Source: Bugula neritina (lineage: Eukaryota > Animalia > Bryozoa). From it: a stretch of 64,000 nucleotides of DNA. Below are positions 33,301 to 46,181 of the stretch, piece after piece; within the stretch, counting starts at the first letter, position 1, and each line of letters opens with the position of its first letter. The stretch is taken from the NCBI GenBank assembly GCA_964035545.1, contig OZ037767.1:6216707-6280706 (forward strand), read 5' to 3'. Under the pieces are notes generated by a model. It did not search any database, was not told the origin of the DNA, and worked only from the letters and a program-made list of their open reading frames with translations. The translations under genes were made by a program, and so were the position numbers.

Positions 33301-36300
33301 TTGATAACCACAGTTTATTTGTAGTTATACACTAGCTTGTGTTAATCCTGTATCACTGCATAATATAGGAACAGTGAGTTGGGTTCAATCAATAAAACCA
33401 TCATAAGTCATAGTAATTTTAACGAAATTCTGATATTGCTGCATGTTTCTTTTTTATTAAAAGAATGCAATTAACTGCAGATGTTCTGCAACAGATGCCT
33501 GAGAGAATATTTACAACTTACAGACAATTTCTTGCTGCCAGATCTCTGTGGAGGCAGCGACGGCCAACCAGAAATTCCATACCAGCTGCCACTTGAAACC
33601 CAAAATGTAGTAAATCTCCATGAGAGAAATGCTACAGTTCAGATAGTATAGGCTATAATCTCGCAGTAGAAGTAGACATCATATATCTAGACTGTGTATT
33701 CTTAGCGCAATTTATACAACTCTAGTCTGTTCTATAATGAGCTAAATAGTGGGAATATTATTTTAAAACATGATGGTAATATAAAATGTCATTTGCTGAC
33801 ATATTACAAACTTGAAACAGATAGATATCAGCTATATTCACCAAAAAACTGGCATTTATCTTAAATAACCCCATGCATTAAATTCTAAATAAAAGTTGTT
33901 GCCTGAACAAACTTCTTATGAAAAGCATCACATAACTATAATATTAAATATCGTAACTTTGTAAATGTAACACTTTGAGTATCTAGTAATTGATTGATTG
34001 ATGAATGGATAAAAATTTACATACATGCTTTTCCGATTCCGAGACTAAAGAGTGAAGGTCACCAAGAGCCATATAAGGAAGAACAACTAGAGGTCTGTCG
34101 CCTTCTCGCCACGCGATGCCCAGAGTAGAAAGAATGTTGATATGCCTATAGTCTTTGGTGAAGACTGCTTCTTTCAGAAACTCAATAATCTGGTCCAGAT
34201 TCACATCTGCAGTTTCTATTAAAAGTAACAAACAGTGAAAAAAGCACTTAATATATTATATATTACTGAGATTGTGTGTTTTTAATAAATTCTCAGTTTC
34301 TATATTGAGTATTAATCTTTTATGTTAGAGGTCATTTATAAAATACAATTATTATGGCATAACTTATGAGCTGTCAATCATAATGCATAGCGTTGAAATA
34401 TTTTATTATTAATAAAAACTTTGCAACACACAAACCTCTTAGAGTTTTAACAGCAACAGTTTTCAGCGTGTCTCCTTTGTGTAGAAGTTGACCTATGTAC
34501 ACCTTGCCAAAATGACCTGAAAAGGATCATGACATATTAGCTAAATAAACAATACTTTAATACAATATGAAATATATATCTCTTGATTAAATTTAATTTA
34601 CAAAACATTTTGTGCATTTCCAATATTTATATTTGCAAGATTATTTTAATGCATAAAAAATAAAGTGACAGTTTTTACATATTATAAAAGTTTAAATAAA
34701 TCAGTACCTAATGGTATAATTAGCTACACAAAAATTTGAATTGAATGAAGCCAAATAAGATAATAATGATGTACCTCTTCCTATTTCATGAGCCTTGAAA
34801 CTAAAGCTAAGAGTAGAAGGATCAATGTAAATGTCTTTCACAGCCATTTTCAGTTCCAATGGTAAGTTCTTCTGCCAATAGTTTTCTTCAGCTGCAGTAT
34901 TGTTTGATGAGAGACTTCCTGAATATAAAAAATGTTAAATTTAGCTTTACATTAGAAACAATTGATTTAACATTTTATTAAAAATTATATGACACTTGCT
35001 TACTCAATTCAAAATTTTAATTCAAAAGCTTATATGAAAGCTCAAGTTACCTAATTTATTGGATTATTTTGAAATTGATATGAATAAACTTTTGATGTGG
35101 CAACTTTTGTGTGTGTAGCTTGGGTACATGGAATACTAGCAGAAATTTTAAAACTCAGTCACTTTACAGCAGAGCATTTTTACATTCTCTGGCCTAAGTA
35201 CCATTGATTCACCATTAGCTTTGAGTACCAGAACTATATGTTATAGGCCTATAATATGGTTTTTATAATAATAATAATAATAATGTAGGCCTTATACATG
35301 CATGTTTATATGGTTAAAAGGTCTTGCTAATAGACTGACCACTTCGTAGCTTATCCTGAGGTTTTTGAAATTTTGAGTAAACAGCATAGCCAATTCCAGA
35401 GATGACCAACATTAATCCAACAATTGATCCAACAGCAATCAGTCCAGCTGTAAAGTAAAATCATTTAATGAGAACTATCTTATAGTTGCTCTCATCAGCC
35501 TAATGGCACTCATAACATAATACTAATATGTAGATTACTCACATTGGTGTTAGTAAGTTCAGTCAGCACTATTAATAGCTAAAACATTGTTCATGATTAA
35601 AACAAGCATTTGTACCACCACAGCAAAGCATTATTCACTGGAAAAAGTAATATTCTTACTTTTGAGTGGTCCTGGGTTACTTGGTTTGTTGGTAGCCATG
35701 GACTCGTTGGAGAGTTTCAAAGAGCCTGCACTTAAGTTGAACTTTCCAACTTGCACCTAAAGGGAATAAATAAATAATCAGAATTATAAAGTTATAAAAT
35801 GCAAAATTCGGACAAAACAGTGGGTAGAATTGCAGAGATTGTTATTTATAATCATGAGAGATGAAGGAGTTATTACAGCCATGCATACAGACCTCTATAG
35901 AAACAGACCATGTGTCAGTAGATTGGAGAGAAAGGTAGGACTGGTTGAAGATGGGTTCACATTTCAGTTCCTTTTCCATCAGTTCAACCACATTACAAGG
36001 TGTGATAGCTGAGACAACATTATCAACTAGATATACTTTGTAGTCTGCAGGTAGAAGAGATGTGTTGAGGTTGTCTCCCTTTACATTCAGCATTTTATCT
36101 GTTTCTACGTGGAATATCTACAATAGGAATATGGTGTTCTATATAATATCTTATTAAAACATGCAAAGAAAATGATAAATTTAAGACATTGCCTTCATAC
36201 AGTTTATTTCTTTTTAGTCATAAAAAATGCTATTTGGTGTAGTGTTTTTCAACTTTATTGCCTTCAAACACTGAAAAAAGTTATGAAATTAAATGAAGAA

Positions 36301-45300: not shown

Positions 45301-46181
45301 TGTCTATAGTCTATATACTGTCTATACTCTATTGAGTCAGTATGGTAGGTAATAAAAACCTTCAAAATACCTGCAATATTTGTGACATTCCTGTTGGAAA
45401 AAACCCTGATAACAGAGTTACCATCACCAACTATGAACCCTCCAGGATTCAGCAAGTCTCTCTCAATGTCTTCCACCTCCCTCAGCTCGTAATAATTTAC
45501 TCTAACTTCTTCCAAATCTCCAAATGAGACAAGACTTTAAATATAAGCAACAGGTTTAGTAAAGAATGCAGTTCAACAGTTAGTACTGCACAACAGTTCT
45601 GTACATATAAGGTCACCATGTGTAGAAAGAGATACCCAAGATCTTTTAGGGAGCAGACTAAACACATAGAATACCTACAGCTAACAGGTATAGAAATGAA
45701 ACTAGTCAATAGATATTTGATCTATTGAAATCCTGTAATTGATTCAATAATAAAAAAGCCAATGGCTAAGAAAAAACAGTATTACTTTTCTATTTAACCT
45801 AATATTTCAATGTAAGCTTTTTGCCAATTTCTATTTATAGCTGAAACTTCACAAAAATCGAATTTCTTGTCTTATTCAACTTGCCAGCAAAGCGATCAGA
45901 CAACTGCTATTAAACAAGACATCATTCCTCCCTCAACCACCTACTGCCTGTCCTTAGACTGAGTGTACATGTGACTTAATAGTAACTGGGCATTAAAGTG
46001 TTGTGTTGCTACGTATAACCATAAACTACTTCCTTTCATAATGAAACAATGATGCCAGACTTTTAGCAGCAAAGAGTACTTACGTTTCAGAGAGAGTAGT
46101 ATCAGTATTAGTCCCATTATTAAAATCTACACATATGATCATCAGCAGAACTAAAAAAGTTGGTTTAGTTAGATTTCCCAT
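30380..46181 (-). CDS. MET/RON-family-like receptor tyrosine kinase with NHL-propeller + Sushi + IPT ectodomain (~1,200 aa, 24 exons)
   Basis: Phase-consistent exons: 46181-46084 (signal peptide); 45534-45371, 43914-43591, 41986-41780, 41472-41350, 40689-40537 (NHL-like); 40240-40029 (Sushi); 38656-38511, 38054-37878, 37553-37451, 36770-36671, 36499-36360, 36117-35893, 35756-35660 (IPT/TIG); 35447-35340 (TM); 34918-34775, 34516-34436, 34215-34025, 33631-33522, 33119-32957, 32742-32606, 31933-31827 (kinase: [55 protein letters not shown]); 30848-30717, 30615-30380 (tail). Confidence 0.9.
31185..31280 (+). mobile_element. tRNA-derived SINE, copy 2 (diverged)
   Basis: GGAGCAGTC..CCTAGTGATTAGAGCATTGG..AAGGTCAGTGGTTTGAGCCC..GCCATTAGTGATGCT aligns with copies 1 and 3. 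Confidence 0.65.
31333..31763. mobile_element. MITE family A, copy 2, in an RTK intron
   Basis: TTAGCGCAGGGC..CGTATTTT..CACCACAAGTAGAAA at the left and TTTCTACTTGTGGTG..AAAATAC..GTGTGGCCCTA at the right. The internal TAATTGGCTGGTA..GCGAGCCCA segment is the reverse complement of ~48130-48160. Confidence 0.75.
31972..32389. repeat. (TG)n/(TGCG)n microsatellite
   Basis: Direct inspection. Confidence 0.95.
38928..39297. repeat. (TA)n microsatellite
   Basis: Direct inspection. Confidence 0.95.
42043..43344. mobile_element. Non-autonomous DNA transposon (~1.3 kb) in an RTK intron
   Basis: Imperfect TIRs TAGGGGTAACAGGG..GGGGGGCACAACG and CGTTGTGCCCCCCCC..TGTTATTCCTA. The GGGCACAA(T/C)GGGCC motif recurs internally at ~42241-42280 and ~42920-42985. 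Confidence 0.6.

Follow-up and report, generated by a model that had tools for sequence, protein, structure and literature searches.

The receptor tyrosine kinases (RTKs) MET and RON carry a seven-bladed Sema propeller and a PSI domain ahead of four IPT domains, followed by a single transmembrane (TM) segment and a kinase; the C-terminal tail of MET has a bidentate docking site. The Met receptors of annelids, molluscs, echinoderms and chordates have been described as Sema-headed, and the Met-LP kinases of Lophotrochozoa and Echinodermata, which are invertebrate MET-like kinases with a reshuffled ectodomain, keep the complete plexin ectodomain, including Sema (PMC6374515). Here we describe a receptor gene in a 64,000-nucleotide stretch of DNA from the bryozoan Bugula neritina (contig OZ037767.1, 6,216,707 to 6,280,706; hereafter the window), which appears to join a MET-type body to an NHL propeller and a Sushi domain. 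Six-bladed NHL propellers of this kind are found in NHLRC2, SOQ1 and teneurins, none of which has a kinase, and the extracellular NHL domain of teneurins mediates cell-cell recognition. Judged by its arrangement, the nearest functional analogue is PknD of Mycobacterium tuberculosis, a bacterial Ser/Thr kinase with an N-terminal kinase domain, which likewise has a propeller sensor outside and a kinase inside, but has neither Sushi nor IPT domains and is thus an analogue, not a relative. The PknD sensor mediates adhesion (PMC3322341).

The gene lies on the minus strand and consists of 24 exons running from 46181 to 30380 of the window, which encode 1223 aa with GT-AG at all introns and no internal stops. 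The order of domains is signal peptide, NHL propeller, Sushi, probably three IPT, TM segment, MET-like kinase and a Tyr-rich tail, and the ectodomain comprises ~755 aa. The model was built from genomic DNA and from comparison between loci, with exon bounds set by eye. On balance, we judge that the best explanation is a single-pass RTK formed by exon shuffling, with an NHL head on a MET-type body.

Compared with MET and RON, the receptor is alike in its IPT stalk, its single TM segment and a kinase that matches human MET best in the PDB, and unlike in having no Sema or PSI, probably three instead of four IPT domains, an NHL and Sushi head, neither a furin-type site nor a YxN or YxxM motif in the tail, TEVW in place of SDVW and, in the copy in the window, no tyrosine pair in the activation loop. 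It is thus a MET-type kinase with a new head: the kinase is closest to MET by its PDB matches, whereas the head, the missing PSI and the missing docking site set it apart. Unlike Met-LP, it is without Sema or PSI; unlike NHLRC2, SOQ1 and teneurin, it is without thioredoxin or YD-shell. Literature searches aimed at the architecture found no paper describing the NHL-Sushi-IPT-kinase combination, and three related papers, the holozoan kinome survey of PMC8662651, the oyster kinome of PMC4883820 and a bryozoan genome paper (PMC13326412), do not use the word NHL. A protein-cluster search (Atlas) for the head domains returned generic NHL and Sushi clusters only. The remark in an initial annotation of this DNA, that the architecture is not recognised from described families, agrees with what these searches found, although the architecture may occur more widely outside Bugula without having been noticed. 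Head-swapping is a known process in invertebrate receptor kinases, which limits the surprise.

The propeller head and its surface family

Profile comparison was done exon by exon, using an array-propeller profile built from the single-exon NHL proteins of the same genome. Receptor exons 2-6 are collinear with this profile, exon 3 at E 1e-19, exon 5 at E 1.5e-4 and the others weakly, and the receptor propeller block and the array propellers have in common the same four Cys and the outer intron phases, 2 and 1. Pfam was likewise run exon by exon (the spliced protein was joined locally for the frame check and the kinase-tree columns only), and its NHL match is weak for exon 3 (E 0.088; 13.3 bits against the curated cut-off of 20) as well as for the array member L007 (15.2 bits against 20). 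The structure model of L007, with a predicted local distance difference test score (pLDDT) of 90.6, has 24 strands, i.e., six blades. Among solved structures it is closest to NHLRC2 and SOQ1 (Z 33.5, root-mean-square deviation 2.5 A over 290 residues), then to a teneurin-like protein (Z 28.9), TRIM71 and PknD (PDB 1rwi, Z 24.8), with ~15-20% identity to the NHL propellers of NHLRC2, SOQ1 and teneurin.

A Sema domain is absent from the top 50 structural neighbours of the L007 model; Pfam places Sema at three places in the genome, none of them at the receptor locus, where PSI also has no match and the Sushi domain occupies its place. With the fold transferred from L007 by exon collinearity, the receptor head is predicted to be an NHL propeller from a locally expanded surface family. 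The propeller had been read initially as NHL-type, and the profile matches together with the six-blade model nearest to NHLRC2 uphold this; on the same two grounds, a divergent seven-bladed Sema head was rejected. Exon 3 shares 91% identity with B. neritina KAF6033994.1, and the start of exon 2 is probably 45534, judged by conservation in the orthologue and paralogues.

The family itself is large: single-exon NHL propellers of ~300 aa number at least 130 in the genome and form tandem arrays on C2, C7 and C8. These differ from the receptor in having the propeller in one exon, followed in most of the eight array genes inspected by a Thr-rich stalk, a TM segment and a short tail, with no kinase. 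Among the papers found in our literature searches, none describes these single-exon surface proteins of Bugula, and the nearest named propeller matches are bacterial, which makes a bacterial source of the propeller conceivable. Relatives in other assemblies include one from a sample labelled BRYA16-1, with the same splice phases, and, in another assembly, a contiguous open reading frame (ORF) with a signal peptide; three homologue searches, covering a length range of 0.55-1.75x the query, found the propeller family in other samples and no kinase fusion. On one JGI contig (L083:126-1481, P0194), a single frame combines a signal peptide, a propeller of this type and a 130-aa C-terminal domain.

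The MET-type stalk and kinase

Behind the propeller, Pfam recognises the Sushi domain (PF00084, E 5.9e-7 at 40238-40029; 30.2 bits, cut-off 20.7), which contains a Trp and four Cys, and the first IPT (TIG, E 6.1e-5 at 38656-38528, above cut-off). In the receptor and in its paralogue on C3, the first IPT has PDB matches to plexin-A IPTs and weakly to MET residues 657-686, i.e., the second IPT of MET. Pfam has no match for the second IPT-like domain (exons 10-12), and a model of the third region is all-beta with a pLDDT of 67, the IPTs of MET, plexin A1 and a Bacteroides protein appearing at Z 5-6 only in the company of unrelated beta folds. Of the roughly three IPT domains counted initially, the first therefore stands by Pfam, the second is assigned from its start motif and its conservation in paralogues, and the third is putative. 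The distance from Sushi to TM is ~320 aa, leaving space for three IPT, this unconfirmed third included, against four in MET. The first retained IPT matches, weakly, the second of MET; Sema, PSI and IPT1 were therefore probably all exchanged in the graft, with the join at a phase-0 intron. The initial picture of one propeller swapped for another thus holds for an NHL head on a MET-like stalk and kinase, and is refined in that PSI and the first IPT were apparently replaced as well. The intron pattern from the first IPT to the end of the kinase presumably follows human MET exons 8-20 in sizes and phases, and we take the kinase exon lengths of 81, 110 and 137 nt, and their phases, to agree with human MET exons 16, 18 and 20.

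In the kinase, Pfam PK_Tyr (PF07714) matches five of the six exons, the last weakly (E 0.046), with the G-loop exon outside the scan. The best PDB match is human MET for both kinase exons tested (E 1e-10 to 5e-10), and for the second of these MET is ranked before MER, AXL, TYRO3 and RON, so that the MET-like character of kinase and stalk, already noticed in the initial annotation, is borne out by these matches and by those of the IPT to plexin-A and, weakly, MET. The G-loop, the VAVK lysine, the helix-C glutamate, HRD-AARN and DFG are all present as sequence motifs in the receptor model; the G-loop, a 12-residue motif and DFG are intact in the kinase exons of the window copy. A tree of Bugula kinases (C4_21.83 was left out as too short) places the three kinases of this family, i.e., the window copy and the two kinase-bearing paralogues described below, on one branch with support of 93/98, inside an unresolved MET-like set. 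TEVW and the tail motif YSYAR are common to all three, and none of the ten tail tyrosines of the receptor stands in a YxN or YxxM context.

The window copy retains the position of MET Y1230, and it alone has QF at the YY pair of the activation loop, both kinase-bearing paralogues keeping YY. The activation switch of MET runs through Y1234/Y1235, and Y1235D activates MET (PMC10654029). Because the loop tyrosine pair is lost, a MET-type phosphorylation switch is out of reach: the window copy cannot be switched in the way of MET, and may be leaky, weak or partner-dependent.

Further MET-like kinases with propellers nearby are found at C3:23.58-23.71 Mb, where matches to single-exon propellers, in pairs in four of five cases, precede MET-like kinases by 6-15 kb; four of these arrangements have both on one strand. 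This suggests a second NHL-headed subfamily in which the propellers are still single-exon; the receptor heads at C3:23.6 Mb, C5, C2 and C4 were placed by match position only, and a single origin of both subfamilies is neither favoured nor contradicted by the kinase tree (approximately unbiased (AU) test p 0.48). The Bugula genome thus seems to hold several such grafts, some with split-propeller heads and some with paired single-exon propeller heads, so that it offers a natural experiment on the acquisition of new inputs by a receptor kinase. At C4:9481273-9488001 (minus strand), matches to PSI, two TIG and a divergent kinase with one tyrosine in its activation loop follow one another, which makes this locus a candidate conventional Met or Met-LP. 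Two further genes have ten or more TIG domains (C6:14874766-14891624 and C3:27338480-27354750) and are possibly fibrocystin-L-like, the one on C6 lying 100 kb from the C6 receptor paralogue.

Paralogues and alternative readings

Exon 3 is common to five paralogues in the genome. Two of these, at C3:24.32 Mb and C6:14.77 Mb, have propeller, Sushi, IPT, TM, kinase and tail in the same order within ~14-16 kb, with the same join phases (phase 1 into Sushi, phase 0 from Sushi to IPT) and introns of only ~0.3-0.5 kb at the joins. No signal-peptide or start exon was seen between head and IPT stalk, and no TM segment or stop after the propeller. A search with the Sushi exon of the C3 paralogue finds close copies at the six split-propeller loci, six in all, and nowhere else. 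Since the kinases of the family copies are only ~55-70% identical per exon, the arrangement is old; the paralogue heads are ~35-45% identical. At the other three paralogues (C6:5.73, 6.35 and 14.63 Mb), no kinase was found in the DNA read nor in the genome kinase searches, and one of the three has an in-frame stop in the propeller; one paralogue is apparently NHL-Sushi-TM. The orthologue in a draft B. neritina assembly keeps the reading frame and the splice sites in the 13 exons compared, at dS 0.14 and a ratio of nonsynonymous to synonymous substitution rates (dN/dS) of 0.55. In the draft, the end of exon 8, the first IPT exon, is also partly duplicated, with the second copy at L062:14247-14285.

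Propeller and kinase are therefore very probably parts of a single fused gene, as the repetition of order and phases at two kinase-bearing paralogues indicates from DNA comparison, and the transcript would be continuous across the joins. The initial annotation had likewise assigned the NHL exons to the kinase gene and described one phase-consistent ORF; at the DNA level, the stop-free 24-exon model agrees with it. None of 20,000 random chains with exon lengths as in the receptor model was stop-free, a loose control given that the exon bounds were chosen by eye.

In the mechanism that we propose, a MET-type body (the last three IPT, TM and kinase) would have acquired a new head at a phase-0 intron, composed of a signal peptide, a six-bladed NHL propeller of the bryozoan surface family, probably with disulfide bonds, and a Sushi spacer. 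The Sushi and IPT domains would hold the propeller away from the membrane, and the propeller would bind a surface-bound or matrix partner, plausibly a kinase-less NHL protein of a neighbouring cell. By analogy with teneurin, and with plexins, in which Sema binds Sema (PMC6374515), the array NHL proteins are candidate partners of the receptor. Clustering would then draw kinases together, so that tail tyrosines (YSYAR and others) could be phosphorylated and recruit SH2/PTB adaptors controlling adhesion, migration or budding; the window copy, without the loop tyrosine switch, would have to rely on dimerisation or on a paralogue as its partner.

Several points weigh against an NHL-headed MET-type receptor as we read it. 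The exon joins rest on DNA comparison, not on RNA reads; the fold of the whole propeller comes from a relative, L007, and not from the receptor's own propeller; the window copy lacks the loop tyrosines and has a longer branch than any other member of its clade; and the draft orthologue breaks within the TM exon, at window position 35391. After this point, the draft contig (L062:17942-20278) runs into unique sequence equivalent to window 55642-57706 in the opposite orientation, which is either a ~20-kb inversion leaving a kinase-less form or a misjoin. The long branch, the change of YY to QF where the paralogues keep YY, the absence of a kinase at three paralogues and the end of the draft orthologue at the TM segment would also fit a window copy of the same architecture that acts as a kinase-weak co-receptor or modulator, lending its head and tail tyrosines in the manner of ERBB3 or RYK. 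We think this unlikely, though worth keeping in view: all catalytic motifs are intact, and the loss of a loop tyrosine can release autoinhibition, as Y1235D does in MET (PMC10654029). Much less credible is a decaying duplicate under relaxed selection, to which the lost loop tyrosines, the broken orthologue and the in-frame stop in one paralogue could be attributed, but which has the intact 1223-aa frame and catalytic motifs, a dN/dS below 1 and the conserved splice sites against it; we consider this hardly probable at all. A prediction artefact, in which the head belongs to an NHL or NHL-Sushi gene located upstream of an independent IPT-TM-kinase gene, is only slightly less remote and very improbable. 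In its favour, the transcript joins are known from DNA alone, the NCBI annotation of the draft splits the orthologue into genes of 118 aa and 305 aa, one paralogue is apparently NHL-Sushi-TM, and novel domain combinations are reported to be prediction errors in many cases (PMC4967905). An artefact of two genes is nevertheless unlikely because two paralogues repeat the exon order and the junction phases, giving three diverged loci alike, with short join introns at two of them and IPT exons preceded by no start or signal exon.

A receptor for immunity or self/non-self recognition, whose propeller would detect unrelated colonies or microbes and whose kinase would set off rejection or defence, had been suggested in part by the initial annotation. 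The colonial host, the very large related surface family, the paired kinase-bearing and kinase-less forms and the low identity between paralogue heads speak for such a role, as does a dN/dS that we take to be above that of most developmental receptors. The gene is, however, solitary and outside any tandem array, and in the one pair compared (two Bugula lineages) the ectodomain dN/dS of 0.55 comes from values below 1 in every part: 0.60 in the propeller, 0.37 in Sushi and 0.51 in IPT. These ratios give no sign of allorecognition-type selection, self/non-self recognition finds no support here, and we regard an immune role as doubtful. We return to the NHL-headed MET-type receptor for a wider and quite speculative extension: a contact-signalling system of the bryozoans' own, whose ligands or identity labels would be the 130-plus kinase-less NHL proteins, with the NHL-headed MET-type kinases as readers, the kinase-less paralogues as decoys and the window copy signalling without a loop switch. 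If true, this system would parallel semaphorin-plexin and teneurin recognition from other parts, and might govern zooid contact, budding or colony recognition. For a colonial phylum in which molecular data on signalling are scarce, the locus also provides candidate receptors and candidate ligands of cell-contact signalling.

Gene layout and neighbouring features

The exons are collected in the table. The interval first proposed for the receptor, 35340-46181, takes in the head through the TM segment, 35340 being the end of the TM exon, and leaves the kinase and tail (34918-30380) outside; the peptides quoted with it are all present on the minus strand. At exon 8, the donor 38528 was rejected in favour of 38511, which agrees with phase and orthologue, and the candidate exon 35233-35168 combined with acceptor 34918 was rejected, as it yields a stop.

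Features of the receptor gene (positions in the window) and example locations of the NHL arrays
Feature	Position	Strand	Evidence
Exon 1: ATG and signal-peptide-like hydrophobic segment, phase-2 end	46084..46181	-	Draft-assembly orthologue exon 87.5% identical
Exon 2: propeller, first part	45371..45534	-	Weak match to array-propeller profile 37-64; homologous exon in 4/5 paralogues
Exon 3: propeller, most conserved exon, Cys pair	43591..43914	-	Array-propeller profile E 1e-19; thousands of repeat-protein matches
Exon 4: propeller	41780..41986	-	Array-propeller profile positions 197-243; in four paralogues
Exon 5: propeller	41350..41472	-	Array-propeller profile 252-287, E 1.5e-4; in 5/5 paralogues
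Exon 6: propeller end, phase-1 donor like single-exon array genes	40537..40689	-	Array-propeller profile 294-325; orthologue keeps splice sites
Exon 7: Sushi/CCP, four Cys, phase 1 to phase 0	40029..40240	-	Pfam PF00084 E 5.9e-7
Exons 8-9: first IPT and start of second IPT	38656-38511, 38054-37878	-	Pfam TIG; PDB plexin-A IPT, weakly MET 657-681
Exons 10-12: second IPT-like domain	37553-37451, 36770-36671, 36499-36360	-	Start motif; orthologue and paralogue conservation
Exons 13-14: third IPT-like domain, short stalk	36117-35893, 35756-35660	-	Cys pair conserved in six sequences
Exon 15: TM segment	35340..35447	-	Sequence; paralogues hydrophobic at same place
Possible extra juxtamembrane exon (candidate)	35168..35233	-	Compatible only with alternative acceptor 34891; frame open with or without it
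Juxtamembrane exon to kinase G-loop	34775..34918	-	57% identity over 30 aa to C6:14.77 paralogue
Six kinase exons	34516-34436, 34215-34025, 33631-33522, 33119-32957, 32742-32606, 31933-31827	-	Pfam PF07714; PDB MET
Two tail exons, ten Tyr, stop codon	30842-30717, 30615-30380	-	Sequence; YSYAR common to three kinase-bearing copies
Example array locations	C8:7.58-7.97 Mb; C7:13.4-14.7 Mb; C2:24.0-24.9 and 32.9-33.3 Mb

Long microsatellites of (TA)n and (CA)n type lie in introns of the receptor gene (38925-39298 and 31970-32400), and a dispersed repeat with inverted arms is found upstream of the gene at 47865-48400, with similar sequence in L018 and L062. Tail to tail with the receptor, exons of a plus-strand gene at 21784-28707 encode a GTPase-like start and two FYVE-like Cys motifs; we take this gene to resemble ZFYVE1/DFCP1. 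Elsewhere in the window are thrombospondin type-1-like repeat exons with a hydrophobic segment (200-3160, plus strand), Kelch-repeat-like exons (5981-9233, plus strand), broken transposase-like frames (14539-15924, plus strand) and, on the minus strand at 57589-62526, ankyrin-repeat exons with a SOCS-box-like motif at the end.

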